Below, piece by piece: positions 20,191-62,170 of a DNA stretch of 64,000 nt (position 1 is the stretch's first letter; each line of letters opens with the position of its first letter). Where the stretch lies: assembly GCA_028826165.1 (NCBI GenBank), contig JAPDFW010000115.1, forward strand, positions 1 through 64,000. Reading direction: 5' to 3'. The notes beneath the pieces were generated by a model. The model worked only from the letters and a program-made list of their open reading frames with translations, was not told the origin of the DNA and searched no databases. This DNA is from Anaeramoeba ignava BMAN (Eukaryota; Protista; Anaeramoebae). A program made the translations under genes and the position numbers.

Positions 20191-21993
20191 TTAATTTTGA
20201 TTATTAAATTTATTAATTAATAAATCAAATAAATTTGGATTTGTTTGATTTAATTGAAAATAATCAATTCCATTTTGAATTTCATTAATCATTTCTTGTG
20301 TAATTTGAATTCCTTCTTTAATTTGATTTGAATAAATCCAATATTCAAATATTTGAAATGATTTATTACTTAATTCACTATAATCTGTAACTTTATTAGA
20401 TTTATCTTTTGTTACAGATAAAAACATTCCTCGATATAATTCACTTCTCATTATTAATATTAATTTAGGGAATTTATATTGTTTTTCTTTTCTTTCAATT
20501 ATAAAATCTTTTTCATTTTCATTTAAATAAATTCTTTTCATTGTTTCTTCAATTTTTTCATTTGAATTTATAATTTCTTTAATTTCAGAATATAATATTG
20601 GATTTATTATTCTGTTTGAATAAATCATTTCAAATATTTGATTTGATTCTTTAATTGATTTATTTGAAATAATTTCTTGAAGTTTTTCAATTTGATTTTG
20701 AATTTGATTTAATCTATATTTTAATATTAATTTATGAGCTTCAATTATTTCTCCATTTTTGGTTTTAAATGAAATATTACAAAATTCTTTTCTTCTAAAT
20801 AGTTTTATCAAATCTTCTTCAAGATTGGAAAAAGGAGAAAGAAAAGGAGAATAATAAAGAAATGATTTTTTGTATCCACAAGAAACATGATAATTAGAAA
20901 TATTTTCATTAAATCTTAATTTAGAAAGTTCAATTTGAATTGGAATTAATTGAGATTTTGTATCTCCAGTTCCTAATTGACTACCTTTATTATCTCCAAA
21001 TACTATTAATTTCCCTTTAGTTGTTAAAATCAAAGTATGCTGTCTTCCAACAGAAAAATCAAGAATATCATCATTTTCAAATAAAGATGATTTGAGTTCA
21101 GTAAATTCATAAGTATCTTTGTTTTTGCCAAGTCCATTAAAATAATATCTTCCACATGAATAAAGTTTTCTTTTTGAATTTTCATTTTCTTCTTCTTCTT
21201 CAATCAACATTATTGAATGAAACCATCCACATTGAATATCAATTATTTTTCCTTTTGGAATATTTTGGATTTTGGTTAATTTTTGGATTTTTTTTTCTTT
21301 TATTGATTCTCCTAATCCAAGTTGTTCATAGTAATTATATCCGCATACAAATAATTCTTGATTTGAATTTAAAAGAAAAACAGAATATGGAGCATTTCCT
21401 GAAAATATTTTAGAAACATTTTTCATCATTAAAATTGGTTTTTCTGTTTTTTTAAGTTTTTTAGGATCAAAACCAAGTTGACCATAATCATTTAAACCAA
21501 TTCCATAAGCATTTTGATTTGAAGTTAATAAGTAAATTGAACTATCTCCAGAAACAACATCTTGAATTATTCTATCATTTTTATCTTCAATTAATGATGA
21601 AATATTGATAAATTCTTTTGGATTTTCAAGTAATGATGAAATATTGATAAATTTATCTGGATGTTTTGGATTAATATCATATCCTTTGGCAAATACATTT
21701 CCTTCTTTTGTTAAAATAGCTTCATTGTGTCCACCAACAGTTACTTTTTGAATATTTTCAATTTGGATTTTTGAAGGATTTTGATTTGAATATCCTAAAT
21801 ATTCTATTGCTTTTCCATTTTTAAAAAGGAAAATTGTTGCGAAATCTCCTGTTGAAATTTGTTTAATTTGTTTTTCATTTTCATTTTCGTTTTCATTTTC
21901 AAATTTAAATTGAATTGGTTTTGTTATTTCTTTTGGTTCATTTTTGATAAGTTTTGGATCTTCATTTGAACCAAAAAATATAATTTCATTCAT
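20191..21993 (-). CDS. RCC1-BTB protein (paralog 4)
   Basis: True start MNEIIFF at 21993 by homology to the other paralogs. Carries a 12-aa internal duplication (FINISSLLENPKEFINISSL). Confidence 0.9.
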   Translation of the reverse strand: MNEIIFFGSNEDPKLIKNEPKEITKPIQFKFENENENENEKQIKQISTGDFATIFLFKNGKAIEYLGYSNQNPSKIQIENIQKVTVGGHNEAILTKEGNVFAKGYDINPKHPDKFINISSLLENPKEFINISSLIEDKNDRIIQDVVSGDSSIYLLTSNQNAYGIGLNDYGQLGFDPKKLKKTEKPILMMKNVSKIFSGNAPYSVFLLNSNQELFVCGYNYYEQLGLGESIKEKKIQKLTKIQNIPKGKIIDIQCGWFHSIMLIEEEEENENSKRKLYSCGRYYFNGLGKNKDTYEFTELKSSLFENDDILDFSVGRQHTLILTTKGKLIVFGDNKGSQLGTGDTKSQLIPIQIELSKLRFNENISNYHVSCGYKKSFLYYSPFLSPFSNLEEDLIKLFRRKEFCNISFKTKNGEIIEAHKLILKYRLNQIQNQIEKLQEIISNKSIKESNQIFEMIYSNRIINPILYSEIKEIINSNEKIEETMKRIYLNENEKDFIIERKEKQYKFPKLILIMRSELYRGMFLSVTKDKSNKVTDYSELSNKSFQIFEYWIYSNQIKEGIQITQEMINEIQNGIDYFQLNQTNPNLFDLLINKFNNQN

Positions 21994-22068
21994 TTTTAAA
22001 AAGAAAAAAAATGAAAAAAAAAAATTTGAATTTTTATTGTTTTTGTTTTTGATTTGAAGTGGCGAAAA

Positions 22069-22099
<31 letters not shown>

Positions 22100-22129
22100 A
22101 AAATTATGGATTTTTGTTTAATTTCAATT

Positions 22130-23721
22130 CTATTTCTCGTCAATATTTGTTGATTCTTGAAACCGAGATTGTGTTTTTGTTTGTTTATTTTCTGGTTTTT
22201 TTGTTGTTGGATTTAATGGAGATTTTTCTGGTTTATGTGATTTCATTTTTCGAATTTCTTCAAAATTTTTTAATGGACTTCCCATTTTTTCTTTTTTAGT
22301 TTCTTTTTTAGATATGTTTTGATGTGTTGGATCTGCAAAGAAATCTGCTGAATCAAATCCAGTTGTTGGTTTCTTTTTTTTTTTTATTTTGATTTTAATT
22401 TTAATTTTAATTTTAATTTTAATTTTAATTTTGATTTTAATTATAAATTTTAATTATAATTTTAATTTTAATTTTAATTTTAATTTTAATTTTGATTTTG
22501 ATTTTAATTTTGATTTTGATTTTAATTATAATTTTGATTTTAATATTAATTTTAATTTTCATTTTGATTTTGATTTTGATTTTAATTTTAATTTTAAATT
22601 TTAATTTTAATTTTAATTTTAATTTTAATTTTAATTTTTGATTTTAATTTTAATTTTGATTTTAATTATAAATTTAATTTTAATTTTAATTTTAATTTTA
22701 ATTATAAATTTTAATTATAATTTTAATTTTAATTTTAATTTTAATTTTAATTTTAATTTTAATTTTAATTTTAAATTTTAATTTTAATTTTAATTTTAAT
22801 TTTAATTTTAATTTTAATTTTAATTTTGATTTTAATTTTGATTTTAATTTTAATTTAAATTTTAATTTTGAATTTTAATTTTAATTTTGATTTTAATTTT
22901 AATTTTAATTATAATTTTGATTTTGATTTTTAAATTTTAATTATAATTTTGATTTTGATTTTTAATTTTAATTTTAATTTTAATTTTAATTTTTAATTTT
23001 TAATTTTAATTTTAAATTTAAATTTTAATTTTTGATTTTGATTTTGATTTTAATTTTAATTTTAAATTTTAATTTTAAATTTTAATTTTGATTTTGATTT
23101 TAATATTAATTTTAATTTTTAATTTTAATTTTAATTTTAATATTAATTTTAATTTTAATTTTAATTTTAATTTTAATTTTAATTTTAATTTTTAATTTTA
23201 ATTTTAATTTTAATTTTAATTTTAATTTTAATTTTAATTTTAATTTTAATTTTAATTTTAATTTTAATTTTAATTTTAATTTTAATTTTAATTTAATTTT
23301 ATAAATGAATTTTAATTTTGATTTTAATTTAAATTAGATTTGAATGTTTAATTCCGGTTTCCATTTTTAAAAGAATAAATAAATAAAAGCTCCATTTAAA
23401 TTAAATATAAATTGACTTTTCAAACTTTAATTAAAAAATTTTTTTTTGCATTTTTTTCTCAATTTAAATTTTTTAACGAATTAAAACTTACTTCTTCAAT
23501 TTGTTTAATTGCATATTCTTTTGCTGCTTTTGTTTTCTCTTCAATAACTTTTTCATCTGTTATGTTTTTTTTTTTTAAATCTGCTCTAATTCTCTTTAAA
23601 ATTATTTCGAATTAAAAATTTTTTTTTTTGGATTAAAATTTTTTAATTGATTTTTTTTTATATAATTATTTACTTCTGCTTCATCTCTATCTCGATTTTT
23701 TTTTAATTCATCAAAACTCAT
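22130..23721 (-). CDS. Small 130-aa endosulfine/ARPP19/Igo-like protein; exons 23721-23674, 23593-23492, 22372-22130
   Basis: Three phase-0 exons joined by GT-AG introns: MSFDELKKNRDRDEAE|RIRADL..QIEE|KPTTGFDSADFFAD..*. FDSAD-aromatic is the Greatwall phosphosite motif of endosulfines. Confidence 0.55.
22385..23340. repeat. AATTTT microsatellite filling intron 2 of the endosulfine-like gene
   Basis: Direct inspection. Confidence 0.9.
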
Positions 23722-40465: not shown

Positions 40466-42243
40466 TTAATTTTGATTTTTAATTTTGATTTTTAATTTTG
40501 ATTTTTGATTTTGATTATTAAATTTCTTAATTAATAAATCAAATAAATTTGGATTTGTTTGATTTAATTGAAAATAATCAATTCCCCTATCAAGTTCATT
40601 AATAATTTCTTGTGTAATTTGAATTTCATCTTTAATTTGATTTGAATAAATCCAATATTCAAATATTTCGAATGATTTATTACTTAATTCACTATAATCT
40701 GTAACTTTATTTGAAGTATCATTTGTTACAGATAAAAACATTCCTCGATATAATTCACTTCTCATTATTAATATTAATTTTGGAAATTTATATTGTTTTT
40801 CTTTTCTTTCAATTATAAAATCTTTTTCATTTTCATTTAAATAAATTCTTTTCATTGTTTCTTCAATTTTTTCATTTGAATTTATAATTTCTTTAATTTC
40901 TGAATATAATTTTGGATTTATTTTGGAATTGTTTGAATAAATCATTTCAAATATTTGATTTGATTCTTTAATTGATTTTTTTGAAATAATTTCTTGAAGT
41001 TTTTCAATTTCATTTTGATTTTGATTTAATCTATATTTCAATATTAATTTATGAGCTTCAATTATTTCTCCATTTTCTGTTTTAAATGAAATATCACAAA
41101 ATTCTTTTCTTCTAAATAGTTTTATCAAATCTTCTTCAAGATTGGAAAAAGAAGAAAGAAAAGGAGAATAATAAAGAAATGAATTATTAAATCCACAAGA
41201 AACATGATAATTGAAAATATCTTCATTAAATCTTAATTTAGGAAGTTCAATTTGAATTGGAATTGGTTGATCATTTGTATCTCCAGTTCCTAATTGACCA
41301 TATTCATTATTCCCAAATACTATTAATTTTGAATTAGAAGTTAAAATCAAAGTATGTTTATTTCCAACAGAAATTTCAATAATATTATCATTTTCAAATA
41401 AAGATGATTTGATTTCAGTAAATTCATAAGTATGCCCATCTTTGTCGAGTCCATTATATCTATCATTCCCACATGAATAAAGTTTTCTTTTTGGATTTTC
41501 ATCTTCATTTTCAATCAACATTATTGAATGAAAAAATCCAGATTGAATATCAATTATTTTACCTTTTGGAATATTTTGGATTTTTGTTAATTTTGGGATT
41601 TTTGTTTCTTTGATTCCTAACCCAAGTCTACCATATCTATTAAATCCACATCCAAATAATTCTTGATTTGAATTTAAAAGGAAAATAGATGTTGAAAATC
41701 CTGAAAACATTTTAGAAGCATTTTTCATCATTAAAATTGGTTTTTCTGTTTTTTTAAGTGTTTCAGAATCAAAACCAAGTTGACTAGATTCATTTGAACC
41801 AATTCCATAAACATTTTGATTTGAAGTTAATAAGTAAATTGAACTATATCCAGCAACAATATCTTCAATTATTCTATCATTTTTATCTTCAATTAATGAT
41901 GAAATATTGATAAATTCTTTTGGTTTATTTGGATTAATATCTCTTCCTTTAGCAAATACATTTCCTTCTATTGTTAAAATAGCTTCATTTTTGAAACCAA
42001 CAGTTACTTTTTGAATATTTTCTTCAATTTGGATTTTGGATTGATTTGAATGTTTTGAATATTCTATTGCTTTTCCATTTTCAAAAAGGAAAATTGTTGA
42101 AAAATAACCTGTTGAAATTTGTTTAATTTGTTTTTTATTTTCATTTTCATTTTCAAATTTAAATTGAATTGGTTTTATTTTATTTCTGGCTCATTTTTGA
42201 AAGAATTGGATTTCATTTGAACCAAAAATAAAATTTCATTCAT
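40466..42243 (-). CDS. RCC1-BTB protein (paralog 6), frameshifted near the 5' end
   Basis: Homologous start ATG at 42243. The 421-aa ORF covers the 3' part, and shortened homopolymers lie near 42180-42230. Confidence 0.8.
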
Positions 42244-44483: not shown

Positions 44484-46226
44484 TTAATTTTGATTATTAA
44501 ATTTCTTAATTAATAAATCAAATAAATTTGGATTTGTTTGATTTAATTGAAAATAATCAATTCCAATTTTGAATTTCATTATTTCTTGTGTAATTTCAAT
44601 TTCATTTTTAATTTGATTTGAATAAATCCAATATTCAAATATTTGAAATGATTTATTACTTAATTCACTATAATCTGTAACTTTATTTGATTTATCTTCA
44701 GTTACAGATAAAAACATTCCTCGATATAATTCACTTCTCATTATTAATATTAATTTTGGAAATTTATATTGTTTTTCTTTTCTTTCAATTATAAAATCTT
44801 TTTCATTTTCATTTAAATAAATTCTTTTCATTGTTTCTTCAATTTTTTCATTTGAATTTATAATTTCTTTAATTTCAGAATATAATTTTGGATTTATTAT
44901 TCTGTTTGAATAAATCATTTCAAATATTTGATTTGATTCTTTAATTGATTTATTTGAAATAATTTCTTGAAGTTTTTCAATTTCATTTTTATTTTGATTT
45001 AATCTATATTTCAACATTAATTTATGAGCTTCAATCATTTCTCCATTTTCTGTTTTAAATGAAATATCACAAAATTCTTTTCTTCTAAATAGTTTTATCA
45101 AATCTTCTTCAAGATTGGAAAGAGAAGGAGAATAATAAAGAAATGAATCATGAAATCCAGAATAAACATGATAATTAGAAATATCTTCATTAAATCTTAA
45201 TTTAGGAAGTTCAATTTGAATTGGAAAAATGAATACTTTATCTGTATTTTCATTTCCTATTTGACCAAAAGAATTATTTCCAGATCCTATCAATTTTGAA
45301 TTAGAAGTTAAAATCAAAGTATGAGCATTTCCAACAGAAAAATCAAGAATATTATCATCATTTTCAAATAAAGGTGATTCAATTTCTAAAAATTCATTAC
45401 ATTTCCCAAAATTTTTCCGTGCATTAAATAGAAAAAATCCACATGAATAAAGTTTTCTTTTTGAATTTTCATCATTTTCATTTTCAATCAACATTATTGA
45501 ATTATAATCTCCACATTGAATATCAATTATTTTGCCTTTTGGAATATTTTGGATTTTGGTTAATTGATCAATTTTTGTTTTTGTTATTAATTTTGCTAAC
45601 CCAAGTTGACTATATTGGTTATTACCGCATGCAAATAATTCTTGATTTGAATTTAAGAGAAAAACATGTTTTGAAGAATTTCCTGAAAACATTTTAGAAA
45701 CATTTTTCATCATTAAAATTGGTTTTTCTGTTTTTTCAAGTGTTTTAGAATCAAAACCAAGTTGACCATATTCATTTGAACCAATTCCATAAGCATTTTG
45801 ATTTGAAGTTAATAAGTAAATTGAATTATATCCAGAAACAACATCTTCAATTATTCTATCATTTTTATCTTCAATTAATGATGAAATATTGATAAATTCA
45901 TTTGGATTTTCTGGATTAATATCTTTTCCTTTTGCAAATACATTTCCTTCTATTGTTAAAATAGCTTCATTATAAAAACCAACAGTTACTTTTTGAATAT
46001 TTTCAATTTGGATTTTTTTAGGATTTTCATTTAAATATTCTATTGCTTTACCATTTTTAAAAAGGAAAATTTTTGAATAATTTCCTGATGAAATTTGTTT
46101 AATTTGTTTAATTTGTTTTAGATTTTCATTTTCAAATTTAAATTGAATTGGTTTTATTATTTTTTCTGGTTCATTTTTTAAAAGAATTGGTTTTTCATTT
46201 TTACCAAAAAATAAAATTTCATTCAT
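44484..46226 (-). CDS. RCC1-BTB protein (paralog 8)
   Basis: 580-aa intact ORF. Confidence 0.9.
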   Translation of the reverse strand: MNEILFFGKNEKPILLKNEPEKIIKPIQFKFENENLKQIKQIKQISSGNYSKIFLFKNGKAIEYLNENPKKIQIENIQKVTVGFYNEAILTIEGNVFAKGKDINPENPNEFINISSLIEDKNDRIIEDVVSGYNSIYLLTSNQNAYGIGSNEYGQLGFDSKTLEKTEKPILMMKNVSKMFSGNSSKHVFLLNSNQELFACGNNQYSQLGLAKLITKTKIDQLTKIQNIPKGKIIDIQCGDYNSIMLIENENDENSKRKLYSCGFFLFNARKNFGKCNEFLEIESPLFENDDNILDFSVGNAHTLILTSNSKLIGSGNNSFGQIGNENTDKVFIFPIQIELPKLRFNEDISNYHVYSGFHDSFLYYSPSLSNLEEDLIKLFRRKEFCDISFKTENGEMIEAHKLMLKYRLNQNKNEIEKLQEIISNKSIKESNQIFEMIYSNRIINPKLYSEIKEIINSNEKIEETMKRIYLNENEKDFIIERKEKQYKFPKLILIMRSELYRGMFLSVTEDKSNKVTDYSELSNKSFQIFEYWIYSNQIKNEIEITQEIMKFKIGIDYFQLNQTNPNLFDLLIKKFNNQN

Positions 46227-46273: not shown

Positions 46274-49200
46274 TTAATCCTTTTTCTTAATCTCAACTTT
46301 TAAAGGTTCAAACCAACTTTTCCAATTTGAATAATATAAATAAACGCAAGAAGCAATTCCAGAAAATTTTCCAGGAATTTGAGCAATAACTTCAAATTTA
46401 ACAACCTTTACTTCATTAGGAAGTAAAAAATCCCAATAAAAAACCAATTTAGTTGAACCAATCAATTCAAAAAAAGAAATCTGATTTGTTTTCATCAATT
46501 CATCCAATCTTTCATAAACCGGTTCAATTCCTGCAGGTAATCCAATAACGCAAGTTGTCATTGATTGAGATTTGTCTGTTTTGTTTTCAAATTTCAACTC
46601 AATTGAACCAATTTCTCCTTCAAACATTTGATGATATTCGGTTGATTTGGAATCAATAAATGAAAGATTGCAAAAATCAACAATAGAATCTTTAATAGTT
46701 TCTGGTTTTTCAACAAAATACTCAAATGATATTGAATAAGGTATTTGGATATTATATTCAAAACTTGGTGAAAAAGAACAAGAAATTTCCATTGAATGTT
46801 CCACAATTTTCTTTTCTTTGTTAATTTTATCCGAAAAATCTTCAAATTTCAAAGCAGAAGTTGAGCGATAGCTTTCGAAAAAATTTGGGAATGAAACTGT
46901 TTCAATCACTTGATCATCGAGAATAAGATTCAAATCAAATTTAATTTCCTTGTTCAATTTTTGGATATCTGGGAAATTCACTTCGTTGAATTTAGTGATT
47001 GATTTCAAAGCAAGAAATGTTGCTTGAGTTGATCCAAAAATTCCAATTCGAGAATTTGACATGATCCAATTATAAGAAGAAAGAGCATAAGCATTAAATA
47101 GTTGATGATTTTGTGATTTTTGTGTGAGATGGGAGCACCAAAGAAGCAAACATAAAGAGGTTGTTTCAACAGTCAAATCATTTCCATAACTCTGCATAAT
47201 TGAAGAGGATGAACCTTTTGTATATCCTTCTTTTGCTAAGTTATTATATCCGAGTTCCAAAGCAATTTTTTCCGATTGAGAAAACTGTTCAAAATTGAAA
47301 AGAGCTAATCCAAGTAAAGCAAGAATATACGGATCCTTGATCTCTTTTTTGGAATGGAATGAATGATCAAGAAGATGATTGATTTCCGTTGTTAGTTGAG
47401 TAAAAGAGACCAAATTTGTCTCACTCAAAACCCAAAGAATATATGCTGTTTGTGTTTGAGGAGTTGATGAATAATAATATCCTTTTGTTTTCTCAAAATT
47501 TCCTTTGCCGTCTCTTTGGTTCAATATCCAATCCAATGTTCTTTTGATTATTGATTTGTCAACAAGATCAGGAAACAATTGGGAAAGTTGATGATATTCA
47601 AGAACTCCAAGACATGTTAGTGGTTTGCTTGCGGGATTTGACCCAAAACAAGAAAATCCGCCTTGCGAACATTCATAAGTGATGAGTCTTGAATAGCCTG
47701 ATTTCAAATATTCGGTTGTTTGCTTCATTTTTGCATAATCTTTGATTCCATTAACAAGAAAATATTGAAAAGCAGCTATCATTGGAATTACTGTGCTTGT
47801 TAGCTGCTCAAAACATCCATGAGGCTCCCGAATTAGTGTTGAAACTCCTTCTTGAATTGATTGCATTGTTGAAAGACATAGTTTTGATGTGATTATCATC
47901 GAATTTGGAACATATGATTCAAGATTCAATTGGATTTTATGCACAAAAGGTTTTTCATTCATTTTGATTAATCCAGAATAGCATTTTTGATAAGGAAATC
48001 CTCGAGAAAATAGTCTGGTTGATTTCGCAATTGAATCTTTCAATGGGATATTTGTTGGTAATGATGATAATGTTGAAAATCCTGAAATCAATACTTCATC
48101 TTCTTTTTTAAGTATTTTTTTCCTGAATTTTTCTGTTAAATCTTTTGGTTCTTCAACAACTAAATGGAAAAATTTTCTAATACTTTTTTGAGGTGATAAT
48201 TCAAAGTTTTGCTTATTCGCTTCATTGTTTGCCAATCTCAAGAAGTTATTAGTGTTGATTCCAATTTCAATATTGCAATTTTCATTTGTTGAATTGACAA
48301 CAGTTACAGGTGAATAAAATTCATCTCCAAAACTAACTTGTGAAGGTATTTTTAAATCAAGATAAAATCGTCGGTTTGTTTGAATTAAGAACTCGTTTGA
48401 TGATCCAATTACTCCATCTTCAGAAAATGCAGTTATAAAAACTCTGAATGTTGTGATTGATTCATTGATTTGAAAGATGAATTTTGTTGAATATTGATTG
48501 ATTTCTTGATTTTGTTTTGTTTGAATAAATTCTGAAGAGAAAATTGTTGAATTGAAGTTTTTTCTTGGTTTAATTTGCATTTTTGGTTTATATTTTTCTC
48601 GAGAAAATTTTTCTTTTTCTTTTAAATTTTCTTTTAAATTTTCTTTTTCTTTTGAATTTTCTTTTTCTTTTGAATTTTTTGGAACATAAGCAACACCTAA
48701 AGATTCTGCAAGTTCTCGAAGTTCTTTCTCTTCATCATCACTATCCCTTTCATTATTTCTATCACTATTTTTTGACTGAATTGAATCATTTGGAGAATCT
48801 AAATATCCTGAAAGATCCTCAAGTTCAGTTCCATAATTTGTTTGATTTGAATCATATTGATTTTTTGATTGTAATTCTTCATTAACAGATTCATTTTCAA
48901 GTTCATCTAATTCTTCAATAAGTTCATCTTCATCCAAAATATCTAGTTGAAGTGGTTGAGAAAGTGCATCACTAATTTCATTTGCATCTTCAATTTCTCT
49001 TTTATTTCATTTTAAATTTTGAATTAAATTTTGAATTGAATTTTGAATTGAATTTTTAATTGAATTTTGAATTGAATTTTTAATTGAATTTTGAATTGAA
49101 TTTTTAATTGAATTTTGAATTGAATTTTTAATTGAATTTTGAATTGAATTTTGAATTGAATTTTGAATTGAATTTTTAATTGAATTTTTAATTGAATTTT

Positions 49201-52200
49201 TAATTGAATTGAATTTTGAATTGAATTTTTAATTGAATTGAATTTTGAATTGAATTTTGAATTGAATTTTGAATTGAATTTTGAATTGAATTTTTAATTG
49301 AATTGAATTTTGAATTGAATTTTGAATTGAATTTTGAATTGAATTTTGAATTGAATTTTTAATTGAATTTTGAATTGAATTTTTAATTGAATTGAATTTT
49401 GAATTGAATTTTTAATTGAATTGAATTTTGAATTGAATTTTTAATTGAATTTTTAATTGAATTGAATTTTTAATTGAATTGAATTTTTAATTGAATTGAA
49501 TTTTTAATTGAATTGAATTTTGAATTGAATTTTGAATTGAATTTTTAATTGAATTTTTAATTGAATTGAATTTTTAATTGAATTGAATTTTACTCAAGAC
49601 TATCAATTCTATCAATATCATAATTTTGATTTGTGCTTCTCATTGCACTATGTCTAAAAAGAAACAAAATCAAATTATTAAAAGGATAAATTTTTTTCAT
49701 TTGAATAAAAAATACCCATTTTGTAAAGCTCTCATTAATTCTAAATTTTGATTTGTTTCTTCACATCTCATCATTTGATTTTCCAAAAGCATACGATTTT
49801 CTTGCATTTTCATTAGTTGTTGTTCATACGCTTTCTTCCTTTTCAAACACATAATTGCAGCTAAAAGAAAAAAAAACCAACATAAAATCAATATTTAATA
49901 ATAATAATAATAAAAGAAATTCCAATTTAAAAACCTCTTTTGTTTTTTGATTTCACAAAATCTTTTGCTTGTTTAACTTGAACTTGAATTTTTTCTTCAA
50001 GAAAAACTTCTCTTTTCTAAAAAATATATAAAAAAATCAATAAATACTCCAAATATAAATAATAAATAATACTTCAATTTGCTCGATTGTATTTCTTAAT
50101 TTTTGAATAGTTTCACTTATTTGAGGTTTATTATTTCTTTTCCTTCCAAAAAGTCTAAAAATTCCTTTTTTTTCTACATAATTATTTTCCACACCAAATA
50201 ATGATTTAAATTTATCATCTTGAATTAAATTTTCCAATTTATCAAAACTCAAATCAAAATAAAGAAATCTTCTCCATCCTTGTGTTCCAAGAAGAAGATC
50301 AAGTTTGAGTTCAGGTTTGAAATTATCAAGAGGATCTTGTTCGAAATACGAAGAAGGATCTTCAAAATGAAGAACTTCGTTTTCAAGAAAAACCATTGAA
50401 AAAAGAGAAGGATTTCTCTTTCTTTTTTGGATCATTCGGAAAATTGAGTCTTCAGTTACAGTTATTGCACAATAAGCAGGAATGGAAATGTTTTGATTGC
50501 TGTGCAAAAGTGTTTGAATATTCATTTCAACAAAATCATTTTGAGTGTAAACATCCTTGTTTTTTGTGATTTTGAACTCAATTTGATCTTTTGGTTTAAC
50601 AAAAATAAGTCTTTCTGCTAAAGGAAGTGATTTTTCTTGATTCCAAATGGTGATTCTTAACACACCATCATTATTTTTAGGATCCAAATCAAAAACTTGT
50701 TCATCTTCTTTATTTTCAAGATGAATATCTTTTTTCATGATTATTTTTTCTTTTTTATACAATCCAACTTGAATATCTTGTTCTTCTAATGAATAAATTC
50801 CAAACTCAATTTTCTCGTTGAATTCAAAACATTCCTTTTTTGAGATGAATGATATTCCTTGATTCAATGGTTTTGGAAGTTCGAAAATTTTTTGAATTCC
50901 AAAAGGTTTTTTGATTTTCAAATGATAAATTTGATTTTTTTCTGGTTTGAAAATAAAATAACCTCTTCCTTCATGCAAAGTTGAGATATTTGAAACAACC
51001 AAGTTTGATGAATCACAAATTTCTGCTTGAATATCAGCTGGTTCACCTGATAAAACTAAAGATGCTTCAAAATAACAACGACATGTTAATCCATAAATTA
51101 AATAACCTCCTTCAGGAAAAAATTCCACATTTAAATTGGTTTGAATCAATGGAATTGTTCTTGTTATATTTCCTTTTATTCCCTGATGTGTTATTATGCA
51201 TGTTATTGTTCCTGTTCCTTCTCCTAAATTTTCTGGGAGTTGAAATGTTATTAAACATTTTGATTCTTCGTTTAAAATGTAATTTTGTTCATGAATTGTT
51301 TTTGCATTTAATTTTGCTATGACTTGAACATTTGCATTTTGAGCTAATCTTCCATCTTTTTTTTTAGCGAAAAAGATTGCAGAAACTTTTGAAATTTAAA
51401 TTAGATTTTAATTTTATAAATGAATTTTAATTTTAATTAAATTTTGATTTTGATTTTGATTTTAATTATAATTATAATTTTATAAATGAATTTTAATTTG
51501 ATTTTGATTTTGATTTTAATTTGATTTTGATTTTGATTTTAATTTTGATTTTGATTTTAAATATAATTTTAATTTTGATTTTAATTTTATAAATGAATTT
51601 TAATTTTAATTTTGATTTTAATTTTATAAATGATTTTAAATATAATTTAAATTTTATAAATGAATTTTGATTTTAATTTTATAAATGAATTTTAATTTTA
51701 ATTTTAATTTTAATTTTAATTTTTAATTTTAATTTTAATTTTAATTTTGATTTTAATTTTAATTTTAATTTTTAATTTTAATTTTAATTTTAATTTTAAT
51801 TTTAATTTTAATTTTAATTTTAATTTTGATTTTAATTTTAATTTTGATTTTAATTTTTAATTTTAATTTTAATTTTAATTTTAATTTTAATTTTAATTTT
51901 AATTTTAATTTTATAAATGAATTTTAATTTGAATTTTATAAATGAATTTTAATTTTAATTTTAATTTTGATTTTGATTTTTAATTTTATAAATGAATTTT
52001 AATTTTAATTTTAATTTTGATTTTAATTTTAATTTTAATTTTATAAATGATTTTAATTTTAATTTTAATTTTAATTTTAATTTTAATTTTAATTTTAATT
52101 TTAATTTTAATTTTAATTTTAATTTTAATTTTAAATATAATTTAAATTTTTAATTTTAATTTTAATTTTAATTTTATAAATGAATTTTTAATTTTAATTT

Positions 52201-52869
52201 TATAAATGAATTTTAATTTTAATTTTAATTTTAATTTTGATTTTAATTTTATAAATGAATTTTAATTTTAATTTTAATTTTAATTTTGATTTTAATTTTA
52301 ATTTTAATTTTAATTTTAATTTTAATTTTAATTTTAATTTTAAATATAATTTAAATTTTATAAATGAATTTTAATTTTGATTTTAATTTTAATTTTAATT
52401 TTATAAATGAATTTTAATTTAAATTAAATTTATAAATGAATTTTTTGAAATAAAAACCAGTTTCATTTGCTCCATAAGTTCTATTTAAATATTCAAAATC
52501 AGTTATAAAAACAGGAGATTGAAAAGAACGAATTGAAAAATCACGAAAAGAAGAAGGAATTCCAAAACAATCTTGATGAGAAATTTTAATTTGATAATTT
52601 CCACCTTTTAAATCCAAAGGAATTTTAAATTGAAAATAATAAACAGAATTTTTTGGTTTTTCAAGAAAAGAAGAAAAAATAGAATTTTTGGTTGAATCAA
52701 TAATTTCAATTTTTGCTTCACAATTTTCAATATTTAAACAAGGATAATGGGAAAAAAGATCAAGTAAAATTGCTTTAATAAAAATAGTTTCTTCAGGTTT
52801 ATAAGTTTGTTTATCTAATAAAATATGAGTATAAAATCTTTGTTTTTCTGAATTAAAATATTTTTCCAT
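46274..52869 (-). CDS. Alpha-2-macroglobulin/thioester-containing protein with an in-frame Snf7/CHMP4 (ESCRT-III) insert in the bait region. Exons 52869-52458, 51385-50073, 50016-49935, 49860-49716, 49653-49594, 48998-46274 (4737 nt, ~1578 aa).
   Basis: MG motif DKQTYKPEETI, VEFFPEGGYL, LDLLLGTQGWRRF, ESITTFRV, thioester PHGCFEQ (GCFEQ at 47804-47818), FGSTQATFLALKSI, C-terminal RBD-like GLPAG..PGKFSGIASCVYLYY. All five GT-AG introns keep the frame. Confidence 0.85.
48692..50165 (-). other. Snf7/Vps32/CHMP4 domain embedded in the A2M gene (spans 4 introns)
   Basis: Spliced translation: GIFRLFGRK..SETIQKLRNTIEQIEKREVFLEEKI..KNKRAAIMCLKRKKAYEQQL..LENQ..EETNQNLELMRAL..AMRSTNQNYDIDRIDSL..EISDALSQP..DEDELIEELDELENE..DDEEKELRELAESLG. 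Confidence 0.9.
49010..49590. repeat. Intronic (gaattgaatttt)n satellite in A2M-Snf7 intron 5
   Basis: Direct inspection. Confidence 0.92.
51400..52440. repeat. Intronic AATTTT / ttttataaatgaatttt satellite in A2M intron 1
   Basis: Direct inspection. Confidence 0.9.
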
Positions 52870-52973: not shown

Positions 52974-53884
52974 ATGGGTTCAATAAAAGAAATTTATGAG
53001 TAAAATTTTAATTTTATAATTTTAATTTTAATTTAAATTTTAATTTTATAATTTAATTTAGATTTGTTATTAAAGATGTCATCTCAAAAGTAAAAGAAGA
53101 TTTTATTAATGAAGGAATTCACGAACAAGTTTTAAACGAACTTGAATTCTCATGGAGACGTCGATTAAAAGACTCACAAGCACTAGAAGAGATGTCAGAA
53201 AACGAAAGTGATGAAACTGAACAAGATCCACTTGAAAATATTCAAAATGCACCACCTCCAACTAAATTTCGTTCTCCTTTCGGAAAAGTCAATCCAAATC
53301 CAAACAGCATTCCTAACACTCCCCAACTTCTGAACACAAATTCCCCGCAGATTGTCCCTCAACAATTGGCAATAGACTCCAATATTCAACTTTCTAATCA
53401 AAACTTCCCAAATCACAATCAAATTGAATCTCAATTTATTTCAAATATTCCTCAAGAAAATGATTTTGACGACTCTTCCGATATTGATGATGCTGATATG
53501 GATAATCTCGATGGTTTTAGTGATTCAGAACCAGAAAATTCTGATGAAGAAAATGAAAATCTTACAATTGCTCAACCAAATTATGATTCATTTTCAAATC
53601 AAAAAAATCAATTAAATCAATTAAATCAATTAAATCAATTAAATCAATCAAATCAATCAAAAGAAAATCGTTCTTTGAATGATGAGACTTTAAATTCTGA
53701 TGATGATATTGAGGATTCTTCAGAAGAAGAACCTCCAGATTTAGTTTTATGCCAATTTGAGAAAGTTTCTTTAACAAAAAACAAAAATCGAAAATTTAAA
53801 TGCATTTTTAAACATGGAATTATTCATGTTAATAATCGTGATTTTACTTTCTCTTCAGCAAATGCAGAATTGAATTGGAATTAG
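52974..53884 (+). CDS. GTF2A1: Transcription factor IIA large subunit (alpha/beta, Toa1); exons 52974-52999 and 53062-53884
   Basis: IYEFVIKDVISKVKEDFINEGIHEQVLNELEFSWRRRL N-domain and C-terminal LVLCQFEKV..KFKCIFKHGIIHVNNRDFTFSSANAELNW. Confidence 0.92.
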
Positions 53885-56253: not shown

Positions 56254-59200
56254 TCAATTAAATTGTAAATTTGGATTTAATTGATAAAAATCTTTTAAAT
56301 CTTGAAAATCTTTTCTTTTAATTTCTTTTGTTTTAAATTCTTCATGATAAAGAAAATAAATTAATTCTTGAATTGTTTCAAATGATTTTCCTGAATAATC
56401 ATGAACTTGATTTGATGAATCTGAAACATTTAAAAACATTCCTTTGAATAATTTACTTCTTAAAATTAATATTAATTTATGAACTTTAATTTCTTTTTCT
56501 GAAACAATTATTGTAAAATCTTTTGTTTCATTCTTTTGATATAATTTTGATAAATCTTTTATTATTCCTTTTCTTCCTTTTTTTAATTCAATCCATTTTG
56601 AATCAATTCCAATTTCTTTAAAAAATTCTTCAATTTTCTTTTCTTTTTCTTTAATTTGATTTTTCAATTTATCAAAAGAATTATCATTAGATTTTTGATT
56701 TTCAACTTCCATTTTTTGTTTATTATGAAAAATTTGATAAATTTCATTTAAATTAATAAATCCACAATAAAGAAAATTTAAAGCTAAATCAACTTCATCT
56801 TTGGTTTTTTGTTTACACAAATTAACAAATTTTATAAGAATAGATTCATCATAATCAAATCTTGTTAATAAAATTAATTTATGAACTTTGAATTTAATTG
56901 ATTCTTTTGATTCAACTTGATAATCTGAAAAAATTTCATCATTTTCATTTAATAATTTGTTTAAATCTTCATTTATTGAATAAAATTTGAAGAAATTCTT
57001 AATTAATTCTTCTGTAATTTCATTTTCCTTCAAATCCAAAATATTTGCTTCATTCTTCATTAATAACTCAATAATTTGATGATTATTTTTTTGAATTGAA
57101 ATAGAAAGAGCTGTTTGATTCCAATAATTTGTTTTTGAATTAATATCAATTCCTTTAGAAATTAAATATTCAATAATTTCAATGGAAATATTCCCATTTT
57201 CACAAGCAATATGTAAAGCTGTTTTATTATAATTTGTTTTTGAATTAATATCAATTCCTTTAGAAATTAAATATTCAATAATTTCAATTGAAATATTCCC
57301 ATTTTCACAAGCAATATGTAAAGCTGTTTTATTTTCATCTGTTTTTGAATTAATATCAATTCCTTTGGAAATTAAATATTCAATAATTTCAATTGAAATA
57401 TTCTTATTTTCACAAGCATAATGCAAAGCTGTTTTATGTTCATCTGTTTTGGAATTAATATTAATTCCTTTGGAAATTAAATATTTAATAACTTGAAGGG
57501 AAATATTCTCATTTTTGCAAGCAATATGTAAAGCTGTTTCATTTTCATCTGTTTTTGAATTAATATTAATTCCTTTTGAAATTAAATACTCAACAATTTC
57601 AGGTAAAATATTCTCATTTTCACAAGCATAATGTAAAGCTGTTTTATTTTCATCTGTTTTGGAATTAATTTTAATTCCTTTGGAGATTAAATATTCAATA
57701 ATTTCAATGGAAATATTCTCATTTTCACAAGCAAAATGTAAAGCTGTTTCATTTTCATCTGTTTTTGAATTAATATTAATTCCTTTTGAAATTAAATATT
57801 CAATAATTTGAAGGGAAATATTCTCATTTCGGCAAACAATATGTAAAACTGTTTCATTTTGATTTGTTTTTGAATTAATATCAATTCCTTTGGAGATTAA
57901 ATATTCAATAATTTCAATGGAAATATTTGGATTTTTACAAGCAATATGTAAAGATGTTTCGTTTTGATTTGTTTTTGAATTAATATCAATTCTTTTTGAA
58001 ATTAAATATTCAATAATTTGAAGTGAAATATTCTTATTTCGGCAAACAAAATGTAAAGCTGTTTCATTTTGATTTGTTTTTGAATTAATATCAATTCCTT
58101 TTGAAATTAAATATTCAATAATTTGAAGTGAAATATTTGGATTTTTACAAGCAATATGTAAAGATGTTTCATTTTGATTTGTTTTTGAATTAATATCAAT
58201 TCCTTTTGAAATTAAATATTCAATAATTTGAATAGAAATATTCCCATTTTCACAAGCAATATGTAAAGCTGTTTTATTTTGATTTGTTTTTGAATTAATA
58301 TCAATTCCTTTGGAAACTAAATATTCAATAATTTGAAGTGAAATATTCTCATTTCGGCAAACAAAATGTAAAGCTGTTTCGTTTTGATTTGTTTTTGAAT
58401 TAATATCAATTCCTTTTGAAATTAAATATTCAATAATTTGAAGTGAAATATTCTTATTTCGGCAAACAAAATGTAAAGCTGTTTCATTTTTATCTTTTGT
58501 TTTTGAATTAATATCAATTCCTGAAGAAATTAGATGCTCAATAACTTGAAGTGGAATATTCTCATTTCGGCAAGCAATATGTAAAGCTGTTTCATTCCAT
58601 GTTGATTTTGAATTAATATCAATTCCTTTGGAAATTAAATATTCAATAATTGGAAAGGAAATGTTCTTATTTCGGCAAGCAGTATGTAAAGCTGTTTCAT
58701 TTCTATATTTTGATTTTGAATTAATATCAATTCCTTTGGAAATTAAATACTCAATAACTTCAATGGAAATATTTGGATTTTCACAAGCATAATGTAAAGC
58801 TGTTTCATTATCTTTTGATTTGGAATTAATATCAATTCCTTTGGAAACTAAATATTCAATAATTTGAATGGAAATATTTCCCCATAAGCAAAGATAATGT
58901 AAAGCTGTTTCATTTTTATCTTTTGTTTTTGAATTAATATCAATTCCTGAAGAAACTAAATATTTAATAATTTCAATTGAAATATTCGAATTTTTGCAAG
59001 CAATATGTAAAGCTGTTTCATTGTTATAATTTGTTTTTGAATTAATATCAATTCCTGAAGAAATTAAATATTCAATAATTGGAAAGGAAATATTCTTATT
59101 TTGGCAAGCGAGATGTAAAGCAGTTTTGTTTTCATTTGTTTTTGAATTAATATCAATTCCTGAAGAAATTAAATATTCAATAATTTGAATTGAAATATTC

Positions 59201-59964
59201 TCATTTTGGCAAGCATAATGTAAAATTGTTTCATTATCTTTTGATTTGGAATTAATATCAATTCCTTTGGAAATTAAATATTTAATAATTTCAAGTGAAA
59301 TATTCCCCCATAAACAAAGATACTGTAAAGCTGTTTCATTTTCTTTTGTTTTTGAATTAATATTAATTCCTTTGGAAAGTAAATATTCAATAACTTGAAT
59401 GGAAATATTCTTATTTTCACAAGCATAATGTAAAGCTGTTTCATTTTCTTTTGTTTTTGAATTAATATCAATTCCTTTGGAAAGTAAATATTCAATCATT
59501 TCAATTGAAATATTTGGATTTTTACAAGCAAGATGTAAAACTGTTTCATTTTCATTTGTTTTTGAATTAATTGGAACACCAGTTGAGAGTAATAATTGAA
59601 AAAGTTCAATATTTGGATTATTCATAATAGCAATATGTAATGAATTATTTCCTTTTTGATCTTTCATTTTGGGATCTATTCCTTTGGAAATTAAATATTG
59701 AATTTTTTCAATTTTCATTTGTTTTTCAATTGCAAAATTTAAGATTGTTTTTTCATTTTTGATAATTTGACTTTTTGGAATTGATTCAATTTTTTCTAAT
59801 GTTTGAATATCATTATGTTCAAAAAAATCCCAGAAATCTATTTGATTTGTTTGAATCTTTCTATTAAATTCTGAAATATCTTGAATTTCTTTAAGTGGTA
59901 ATTTATATAATTCGTTGAGATCTTCTTTCTTATTGTTTTTATTATTTTGTTGATGATTCATCAT
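56254..59964 (-). CDS. Ankyrin-repeat (about 25 or more repeats) + C-terminal BTB protein
   Basis: Near-identical 34-35 aa repeats TALHxAC.N.NIS..IIEYLISKGIDINSKT. BTB motifs KVHKLILLTR and KVHKLILILRSKLFKGMF. Confidence 0.93.
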   Translation of the reverse strand: MMNHQQNNKNNKKEDLNELYKLPLKEIQDISEFNRKIQTNQIDFWDFFEHNDIQTLEKIESIPKSQIIKNEKTILNFAIEKQMKIEKIQYLISKGIDPKMKDQKGNNSLHIAIMNNPNIELFQLLLSTGVPINSKTNENETVLHLACKNPNISIEMIEYLLSKGIDINSKTKENETALHYACENKNISIQVIEYLLSKGININSKTKENETALQYLCLWGNISLEIIKYLISKGIDINSKSKDNETILHYACQNENISIQIIEYLISSGIDINSKTNENKTALHLACQNKNISFPIIEYLISSGIDINSKTNYNNETALHIACKNSNISIEIIKYLVSSGIDINSKTKDKNETALHYLCLWGNISIQIIEYLVSKGIDINSKSKDNETALHYACENPNISIEVIEYLISKGIDINSKSKYRNETALHTACRNKNISFPIIEYLISKGIDINSKSTWNETALHIACRNENIPLQVIEHLISSGIDINSKTKDKNETALHFVCRNKNISLQIIEYLISKGIDINSKTNQNETALHFVCRNENISLQIIEYLVSKGIDINSKTNQNKTALHIACENGNISIQIIEYLISKGIDINSKTNQNETSLHIACKNPNISLQIIEYLISKGIDINSKTNQNETALHFVCRNKNISLQIIEYLISKRIDINSKTNQNETSLHIACKNPNISIEIIEYLISKGIDINSKTNQNETVLHIVCRNENISLQIIEYLISKGININSKTDENETALHFACENENISIEIIEYLISKGIKINSKTDENKTALHYACENENILPEIVEYLISKGININSKTDENETALHIACKNENISLQVIKYLISKGININSKTDEHKTALHYACENKNISIEIIEYLISKGIDINSKTDENKTALHIACENGNISIEIIEYLISKGIDINSKTNYNKTALHIACENGNISIEIIEYLISKGIDINSKTNYWNQTALSISIQKNNHQIIELLMKNEANILDLKENEITEELIKNFFKFYSINEDLNKLLNENDEIFSDYQVESKESIKFKVHKLILLTRFDYDESILIKFVNLCKQKTKDEVDLALNFLYCGFINLNEIYQIFHNKQKMEVENQKSNDNSFDKLKNQIKEKEKKIEEFFKEIGIDSKWIELKKGRKGIIKDLSKLYQKNETKDFTIIVSEKEIKVHKLILILRSKLFKGMFLNVSDSSNQVHDYSGKSFETIQELIYFLYHEEFKTKEIKRKDFQDLKDFYQLNPNLQFN

Positions 59965-60045: not shown

Positions 60046-62170
60046 TTACTTAAATTTTCTTTTATTAGAAAAGAAAAAAAATGAAAAAAAAAAAGCAAAA
60101 AAAAAAAAATTAAAAATAAAACATTCTTTATTATTTTGTTTTGAATTTTGTTTTGTATTTTGTTTTGTATTTTGTTTTGTATTTTGTTTTGTGTTTTGTT
60201 TCTTTTTTTGTTTAATTTCAAATTTAATAAATTCTTGTTTTATTAAATCTAATAAATTTGGATATGTTTGATTTAATTGAAAATAATCAATTCCTTTTTC
60301 AATTTCTCCAATAATTTTTTTTGTAATTTTAATTCCTTTTTGATCTTGTTTGTTTTTATTATCAAAATGTTTTGAATTTTTAAATTTTTCTTCATTTAAT
60401 TCATTATAATCATCAAATTGAATAATTTCTTTTGTAATTTGATTTGTATTATCAAAATATTCAAATACTTCAAATTTTTCTTCATTTAATTCTTGATAAT
60501 CATCAACTTGAATAATTTCTTTTGTAATTTGAATTCCATCTTTAATTTGATTTGAATAAATCCAATATTCAAATATTTGGAAAGCTTCATTGCTTAATTC
60601 ACTATAATCTGTAACTTTATTAGAAGTATCATTTGTTACAGATAAAAACATTCCTCGATATAATTCACTTCTCATTAATAATATTAATTTGGGAAATTTA
60701 TATTGTTTTTCTTTTCTTTCAATTATAAAATCTTTTTCATTTTCATTTTCATTTAAATAAATTCTTTTAATTGTTTCTTCAATTTTTTCATTGGAATTTA
60801 TAATTTCTTTAATTTCAGAATATAATTTTGGATTTATTTTGGAATTATTTGAATAAATCATTTCAAATATTTGATTTGATTCTTTAATTGATTTATTTGA
60901 AATAATTTCTTGAAGTTTTTCAATTTCAATTTGATTTTGATTTAATCTATATTTCAATATTAATTTATGAGCTTCAATTATTTCTCCATTTTTGGTTTTA
61001 AATGAAATATCACAAAATTCTTTTCTTTGAAATAGTTTTATCAGATCTTCTTCAAGATTGGAAAAAGAAGGAGAATAATAAAAAAATGATTTATGAAACC
61101 CAGAATAGATATGATAATTGGAAATATCTTCATTAAATCTTAATTTAGGAAGTTCAATTTTAATAGGAATTGATTGGTCGTTTGTATCTCCAGTTCCTAA
61201 TTCACCAAATGCATTCCATCCGAATCCTATTAATTTCCCTTTTTTTGTTAAAATCAAAGTATGTTCATATCCACAAGAAATTTCAAGAATATGATCATTT
61301 TTAAATCGAGATGATTTGATTTCAGTAAATGGTTTTGAATCTTTATTTTTATATTTGGAGATTTGATTATATTGATCAAGAGCAGATGAATAAAGTTTTC
61401 TTTTTTGATTTTGATCTTCAATCAACATTATTGAATACCAATTCGCACATTTAATATCGATTATTTTGCCTTTTGGAATATTTTCGATTTGAGTTAATTT
61501 GTTGATATACCATTCTACTGTATATCCTAATCCAAGTTGTGCCCAAATATTATCTCCGCAACAAAATAATTCTTGATTTGAATTTAAAAGAAAAACGAAA
61601 TTGGAAAAATTTCCTGAAAATATTTTAGAAACATTTTTCATCATTAAAATTGGTTTTTCTGTTTTTGGAAGTGTTTCAGAATCAAAACCAAGTTGACCAT
61701 ATTCATTTGAACCAATTCCATAAGCATTTTGATTTGAAGTTTAATAAGTAAATTGAACGAGCTCCAGAAACAACATCTTGAATTATTCTATCATTTGTAT
61801 CTTCAATTAATGATGAAATATTGATAAATTCATTTGGATTTTCTGGATTAATATGCTCTCCTTTTGCAAATACATTTTTTTCTATTGTTAAAATAGCTTC
61901 GTTTTTTTCTCCAACAGTTACTTTTTGAATATTTTCAATTTGGATTTTTTGAGGATTTTGATTTAAATCATTTAAATATTCTATTGCTTTTCCATTTTTA
62001 AAAAGGAAAATTGTTGATAATTCTCCTGATGAAATTTGTTTAATTTGTTTTAGATTTTTATTTTCATTTTCATTTTCAAATTTAAATTGAATTGGTTTTT
62101 TTATTTTTTTTGGTTTATTTTGAAGAAGTTTTGGTGATTGATTTGAACCAAAAAATAAAATTTCATTCAT
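60046..62170 (-). CDS. RCC1-BTB protein (paralog 9), one frameshift at ~61740 and a duplicated C-terminal segment
   Basis: ORFs 61703-62170 and 60046-61644. Extra t in gaagtttaataag. The C-terminus repeats QITKEIIQxDDYxELNEEKF. Stop position uncertain. Confidence 0.8.

Follow-up and report, generated by a model that had tools for sequence, protein, structure and literature searches.

Background

Thioester proteins, among them complement components, alpha-2-macroglobulin (A2M) and the thioester-containing proteins (TEPs), are regarded as extracellular or periplasmic tools, and in the A2M family it is cleavage within a variable (bait) segment that triggers the molecule. Snf7 belongs to a different field: it is a polymer subunit of ESCRT-III, one of the endosomal sorting complexes required for transport, and in the Rim101/PacC pathway it serves as a platform for the calpain-like Rim13/PalB and the Bro1 protein Rim20/PalA, bringing a protease to its substrate. 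We know of no A2M, A2ML1, CD109, TEP1 or ECAM protein in which a folded host protein acts as bait. Here we analyze a 64,000-nucleotide window of the protist Anaeramoeba ignava BMAN (contig JAPDFW010000115.1, positions 1 to 64,000), in which a gene on the minus strand, at 46274..52869, is predicted to encode an A2M-type thioester protein with a complete Snf7 at the bait position.

This fusion had been proposed, as one not known to have been described, in a sequence-only reading of the window. We searched the literature on cytosolic or fused A2M/TEP proteins, on A2M and ESCRT in Anaeramoeba and on PspA/Snf7 fusions, and found no description of an A2M-Snf7 fusion or of the family it belongs to. 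In the Anaeramoeba genome paper the A2M family appears solely in a PANTHER table, and a broad survey of PspA/Snf7 architectures (PMC11237479) lists no A2M fusion; A2M-PspA and PspA/VIT-VWA fusions are likewise absent from it. Because sister genes carry ubiquitin-like domains at the very site that Snf7 occupies here, the fusion gene and these sisters look, from their sequences, like an undescribed intracellular thioester system.

One reading frame across six exons

Six exons and five GT-AG introns combine into a single predicted frame of 4737 nt, or 1578 codons from ATG to TAA, with intron phases that are mutually consistent; the five GT-AG introns and the 4737-nt frame agree with the earlier proposal. 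Exon 1 (52458..52869, 412 nt, ending in phase 1) opens directly with the first MG domain. Exon 2 (50073..51385) encodes MG3-MG6 and an LNK-like body and runs on into residues 1-31 of Snf7. The next three exons are entirely Snf7, with part of helix 1 in exon 3 (49935..50016), helix 2 in exon 4 (49716..49860) and the middle of the protein in exon 5 (49594..49653). Exon 6 (46274..48998) begins with the 101 C-terminal residues of Snf7 and continues through a K/E-rich linker into the MG7-CUB-TED-RBD body and the stop codon.

Introns 2 (50017..50072, 56 nt, phase 0), 3 (49861..49934, 74 nt, phase 1) and 4 (49654..49715, 62 nt) are short. Intron 1 (51386..52457) spans 1072 nt at 4% GC and is nearly all tandem repeat of the ATTTTA type, and intron 5 (48999..49593, 595 nt) holds a 12-mer tandem repeat. 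The repeats almost fill these two introns, with about 167 copies of the 6-mer (51405-52425) and about 46 copies of the 12-mer (49015-49567); introns of the canonical Snf7 gene of this genome, described below, are repeat-filled in a similar manner. GC content is 21-30% in exons, 4-15% in introns and spacers, and 20% in the genome.

The outer exons encode an A2M/complement-type thioester protein

Profile searches and AlphaFold2 predictions were run exon by exon. Exon 1 matches MG2 (PF01835, 52576..52830, minus strand like all features of the gene) with 35.6 bits. Exon 6 matches the A2M domain (PF00207, 48263..48499, 41.5 bits), the thioester domain TED_complement (PF07678, 46991..47872, 85.3 bits) and, at the cut-off with 21.7 bits, the receptor-binding or MG8-type C-terminal domain A2M_recep (PF07677, 46331..46567). 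The thioester motif GCFEQ lies in the sequence at 47804..47818 and is shared with 17 of the 18 other aligned proteins. Of the 40 alignment columns in which all other family members agree, the fusion gene retains 34.

Predicted structures support the same assignment. The exon 6 model (pLDDT 83, pTM 0.79) is folded from about residue 145 and aligns with native C3, A2ML1 and CD109 at TM-scores of 0.58-0.60 (Foldseek E about 1e-36), whereas the score against activated C3b is 0.27. The exon 2 model (pLDDT 88) aligns with C3 from MG3 through the end of the beta chain, in the LNK region, with Z 10-11 across 320-340 residues of MG3-MG6/LNK; it also aligns with residues 505-930 of ECAM. With MG domains, an A2M domain followed by CUB-TED-MG8/RBD, and the CxEQ motif, the outer exons are those of a member of the A2M/complement/TEP superfamily.

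A secretion signal, which is usual in this superfamily but not strictly defining, is absent from the fusion protein, whose start lies 10 residues ahead of MG1. A divergent TFIIA gene (52974..53884, plus strand) has its ATG 104 bp away from that of the A2M gene, so close that an upstream exon encoding a signal peptide would not fit between them. The sequence-only reading had made both points, with an estimated 100 bp for the distance.

A complete Snf7 at the bait position

The Snf7/Vps32 module is complete, with 228 codons (48695..50165) that run from GIFRLFGRK at the end of exon 2, through exons 3-5, to AESLG in the head of exon 6. Exon 4 alone matches positions 43-89 of Pfam Snf7 with 24.9 bits for a 47-residue piece, and in a six-frame scan of the genome it reaches 32.4 bits, above the Snf7 cut-off. 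In the PDB, yeast Snf7 is the best sequence match to exon 4, and the head of exon 6 matches it too. The start of the module, FRLFGRKR, aligns with the canonical Snf7 start MKLFGRKK, that is, with the basic, membrane-binding N-terminus. At the other end, helices are predicted with low confidence at residues 23-46 and 86-100 of exon 6, in the acidic Snf7 tail; the terminal one is a putative counterpart of the Bro1-binding helix of yeast Snf7. The identification of the insert as a whole Snf7 is upheld.

Both junctions between A2M and Snf7 lie inside exons. On the N side, the family landmark GTQGWRRF (50265..50288), which stands just ahead of the variable segment, is followed in exon 2 by 33 residues still alignable with paralogs (50166..50264) and then by GIFRLFGRK. 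On the C side, within exon 6, the Snf7 end (48695) is followed by a 43-residue K/E-rich linker (48566..48694, mostly predicted with low confidence) that leads to RKNF..TTFRV, the entry of MG7. The module neither opens with an ATG of its own nor closes with a stop codon, and is tethered on both sides; the earlier reading had noted the intra-exonic junctions and the missing ATG. Its place in the A2M fold follows from the structural alignment of exon 2 on the N side and from sequence on the C side, where residues 167-177 of exon 6 align with human A2M at 758, C3 at 784 and CD109 at 690, right after the bait or anaphylatoxin segments. The Snf7 module therefore occupies the position of the bait in A2M and of the anaphylatoxin in C3, as had been proposed.

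Two other identities were considered for the insert. A nested, independent Snf7 gene was rejected since the insert has neither start nor stop of its own. An intein, Anaeramoeba being rich in inteins, was rejected as well: the insert is Snf7, and the exon-by-exon Pfam scan gave no Hint-type domain.

A family of paralogs without secretion signals

A separate Snf7 gene and A2M paralogs with other inserted modules, which the sequence-only reading had proposed to look for, are both present in the genome. We count 12 A2M-type paralogs in A. ignava, the fusion gene and eleven others, and no signal peptide was seen on any paralog start examined. Seven genes form a clade with a short linker at the bait site, 190-270 residues long, disordered and of low complexity. 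Five of their six readable starts show a pattern of the myristoylation type, MGxxx(S/T) and then basic residues, and one such start is confirmed by a transcript-derived protein.

Four further genes form a second clade (contigs C70, C59, C24 and C74; L026:1844-6115, L028:2026-6120, L029:1803-6167 and L036:1731-6170, respectively). In each, the site that Snf7 takes up in the fusion gene is filled by about six ubiquitin-like domains, within one uninterrupted open frame, and one of these genes is annotated as a single protein of 1935 residues. In every array the last domain closely resembles true ubiquitin and terminates in GG, after which further G residues follow. One of the four (C74) has lost the thioester cysteine. 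In Anaeramoeba flamelloides, two A2M-type thioester proteins (P0078 and P0079) lack a signal peptide and bear a C-terminal SPRY domain. Three features make the fusion protein very probably cytosolic: signal peptides are missing from every family start examined, most short-linker starts follow the myristoylation pattern, and ubiquitin-like or SPRY modules occur in relatives.

In the phylogenetic tree, a single clade (support 97) unites the Anaeramoeba genes and, together with a few amoeboid eukaryotes, falls within bacterial diversity. Branch order does not resolve the placement of the fusion gene relative to the short-linker and ubiquitin-like clades. Proteins from Flabellula, Physarum and Protostelium transcriptomes (P0015, P0016 and P0032) fall in the same bacterial-type A2M clade and group with Anaeramoeba; a single ancient transfer to eukaryotes could explain this, or else spread from one eukaryote to another.

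Inserts at the same site in bacterial relatives

The segment after GWRRF is a length hot spot of the family, ranging from 14 to 743 residues. In three Bacteroidota-type homologues (P0004, P0005 and P0007), CarboxypepD_reg and TonB Plug domains lie between GWRRF and MG7, which indicates that this site tolerates folded inserts. A closer parallel is P0040, from a bacterial metagenome (L038:4206-8738), in which a complete PspA_IM30 domain (E 7e-42) begins about 45 residues past GWRRF, opening with the N-terminal motif of PspA. This protein has the GWRRF landmark and GCFEQ but no signal peptide, and its 56% GC contig carries adjoining flotillin/NfeD genes. P0040 is not sister of the amoeba clade in the tree, so a protein of the ESCRT-III superfamily has entered the site twice, independently. 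One search for further A2M-PspA proteins returned P0040 only. In P0170, a VIT-VWA protein is joined to a related PspA module.

Origin of the insert

Within the genome, the insert is closest to the canonical Snf7 gene of contig C106, with about 48% identity over the best-aligned core piece. Intron 2 is identical in position and phase to the first intron of that gene, after LE|KRE, and intron 5 stands at nearly the same position as another of its introns. These shared introns point to a copy made at the DNA level and lead us to reject a retrogene origin. On this comparison of sequences, the insert is derived from the Snf7 lineage of the genome itself, by a DNA-level copy of an intron-bearing gene.

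Elsewhere in the genome, an 884-residue open reading frame on contig C1 (L025:4466-7120, at about 642465-645119 of the contig in G000) resembles the C-terminal part of Snf7 over its first 60 residues, with 36 bits. The rest of this frame has no Pfam match, its weak structural neighbours are bacterial hypothetical proteins, and an RCC1-BTB gene lies directly upstream.

Neighbouring genes and read coverage

Between 86 and 96% of 31-mers sampled from the window are present in two read studies, whose runs are DNA or of undeclared kind. In one run the figure, 86%, lies near the fraction of the window that is exonic, which is no proof that the run is RNA. The window contains members of a large RCC1-BTB family (5555-7327, 16060-17835, 20191-22143, 40466-41731, 44484-46226 and 60046-61644), and further copies occur at L026:6235-8013 and L035:8147-9901. 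At least three A2M paralogs have an RCC1-BTB copy directly downstream, and in their N-termini the RCC1-BTB copies seem much more alike than the A2M genes are. This could be due to chance in a large family, to gene conversion, or to a linked pair. At 56254-59964, the window also encodes a 1236-residue ankyrin-repeat protein with a terminal BTB domain, whose exact sequence is absent from the protein collection searched.

A proposed mechanism and its rivals

We tentatively favor, with a probability of roughly 40%, a cytosolic thioester protein that is addressed to, or triggered at, ESCRT-III assemblies. In this model, the Snf7 module would act as an address: it would co-assemble with ESCRT-III, or be bound by its partners (Vps4 MIT, Bro1 proteins or an MIT-calpain), at damaged or remodelling membranes. 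The segment would be cleaved, pulled or opened there, the spring-loaded body would be released, and the thioester would react locally. In the paralogs, the role of address may be filled by the N-terminal myristoyl/polybasic start, by the ubiquitin-like array or, in A. flamelloides, by the C-terminal SPRY domain. We favor this scheme for the modular pattern seen across the clades, for the PspA parallel and for the completeness of the Snf7 module. The genome encodes Vps4, Bro1 proteins and one calpain.

Several observations weigh against it. To our knowledge, all A2M/C3 proteins studied so far use the segment as a substrate for cleavage rather than as an address. In the sister clade, the GG conserved at the end of the ubiquitin-like arrays suggests a proteolytic trigger, and is compatible with a bait as well. 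Bulky additions at either end of ESCRT-III proteins usually disturb autoinhibition or assembly, so the embedded Snf7 may polymerise abnormally. The branch of the fusion gene in the tree is long (1.8-2.0 changes per site), and the best 150 representatives include no A. flamelloides ortholog of it. Moreover, protein searches for the gene's own product (with exon 6, with exon 2 and in an exhaustive search of representatives) found no annotated or transcript-derived protein, and no ortholog, in NCBI- or EukProt-derived collections, where the protein of a neighbouring gene is present. Nor was there an exact match for a C-terminal version that starts with Met.

The sequence-only reading had put another interpretation first, in which the insert is an integrated decoy within a cytosolic protease trap: Snf7 and, if the idea is extended to the paralogs, the ubiquitin-like array would mimic the host target of a protease of intracellular bacteria or viruses, or of an endogenous protease that docks on Snf7; cleavage within the insert would spring the trap, and the thioester would tie the protease down. 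An insert precisely at the bait position is what such a trap would have, and the short-linker paralogs carry long, disordered, fast-diverging, bait-like segments there. The C-terminal GG cleavage motif is kept in all four ubiquitin-like arrays despite strong divergence, and the Snf7 tail and K/E linker, being predicted as disordered, should be accessible. In addition, the cytosol of the related species A. pumila is home to a Legionellales bacterium that has a Dot/Icm system and for which 184 effectors are predicted (bioRxiv 10.64898/2026.04.11.717937). However, our analysis identified no candidate protease that targets Snf7. For the cytoplasmic bacterial homologue, whose insert in this position is PspA, a decoy that mimics a host protein also makes less sense. 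Other paralogs have gained address-type modules outside the bait (the myristoyl-type start and SPRY), and the Snf7 module is complete down to a membrane-binding start that a cleavage decoy would not need, although its presence is compatible with one. We also know of no protease that targets Snf7. We regard a decoy as less likely than an address, but still as a serious rival. An in-frame A2M/Snf7 gene with the insert at the bait site and, very probably, a cytosolic product stands from the earlier interpretation; a decoy for foreign proteases is hypothetical. The alternative offered there, in which the module addresses the protein or couples it to ESCRT-III, fits the new evidence at least as well, given four ubiquitin-like paralogs and a bacterial PspA homologue at the same site. 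Another possibility is that the insert acts after capture, as a built-in tag for clearance or sorting: the body would bind its target covalently, and the newly exposed Snf7 or ubiquitin-like array would route the complex to ESCRT sorting, autophagy or the proteasome. In the cytosol, such a tag would correspond to the receptor-binding domain by which extracellular A2M complexes are cleared. Both ubiquitin and Snf7 serve sorting machinery and AAA unfoldases as handles, sister clades have them in one and the same position, and this position is buried or constrained in the modelled native conformation. Yet such a tag is purely conjectural, a receptor-binding-type domain is still present at the C-terminus, and Snf7 is a polymer subunit not known as a cargo tag; we find this reading quite improbable.

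More basic doubts concern the fusion itself. The gene may be a young or decaying chimera that is silent, or whose mRNA skips the Snf7 part, or it may yield separate products. The protein missing from the collections and the long branch are what one would then expect, and a published survey counts some eukaryotic Snf7 fusions as annotation errors (PMC11237479). Nevertheless, 1578 codons remain free of stops in a genome whose introns and spacers fall to 4-15% GC, and in spite of the long branch the gene preserves its thioester motif and most of the residues that are invariant in the family. The Snf7 part lacks its own start and stop and is joined within exons on both sides, and four paralogs carry their inserts inside a single open frame, including the one annotated in full. 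That the fusion is not made as such thus seems unlikely. An assembly artefact that joined an A2M gene to a Snf7 gene is very improbable indeed: most of the sampled 31-mers recur in both read studies, on each side of the insert the flank has its homologue in the linker flanks of paralogs and the frame is kept, and the same architecture recurs with other inserts.

To return to a protein addressed to or triggered at ESCRT-III, a bolder form of this proposal would be a cytosolic, complement-like system of covalent tagging in Anaeramoeba, whose members would bear host signalling modules, ubiquitin-like arrays or ESCRT-III, where activation takes place. In the Snf7 and PspA versions, polymerisation of the ESCRT-III-type module at a damaged membrane, or its closed-to-open switch there, not proteolysis, would fire the thioester, and amoeba and bacteria would have converged on this design. 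We consider it distinctly speculative and unlikely as a whole.

The interest of the family goes beyond this choice. A whole family of thioester proteins is found here without secretion signals and with cytosolic modules acquired. ESCRT-III at the activation site would join two fields that rarely meet, covalent tagging of the complement type and the repair or sorting of membranes. That a bacterial relative has gained a PspA insert independently suggests, by analogy, that the link between ESCRT-III-type proteins and the thioester is functional and not an accident. The system lets one ask whether a thioester protein can work in the cytosol and what triggers it there, and whether protists build cell-autonomous immunity from such parts.

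Comparison with known systems

Complement components C3, C4 and C5 resemble the fusion protein in fold and domain order, in the thioester motif of the TED, in a predicted body like that of native C3 and in having a small helical module at the same site. C3, however, is secreted and processed by furin, and its disulfide-rich anaphylatoxin is freed by a convertase, whereas the fusion protein lacks a signal peptide and has a 228-residue ESCRT-III subunit instead. Human A2M, A2ML1 and CD109, insect TEP1 and E. coli ECAM share the MG-A2M-TED-RBD order, the CxEQ motif and a variable segment at this site, but they are extracellular or periplasmic and their bait is unstructured.

Seen from the side of the insert, the module agrees with Snf7/Vps32/CHMP4 in its Pfam and PDB matches, its basic start and its helical core, and putatively in an acidic tail with a terminal helix; those are free proteins of 220-240 residues, while the module is held at both ends within a protein of 1578 residues. 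The nearest likeness in overall design is P0040, a member of the same family that also lacks a signal peptide and carries a complete insert of the ESCRT-III superfamily at the same site, though it is PspA rather than Snf7 and the host is bacterial. The integrated decoys of plant NLRs are comparable in logic only, as a host target domain is built into a sensor: the protein families and the read-out differ, and an insert acting as effector target would be an analogy. A similar parallel holds for the Rim101/PacC pathway, in which Snf7 is a docking site and whose partner types, Bro1 proteins and a calpain, have counterparts in the A. ignava genome. Snf7 is a free subunit in that pathway, whereas binding of Bro1 proteins or calpain to the tethered module described here would be by analogy with it.

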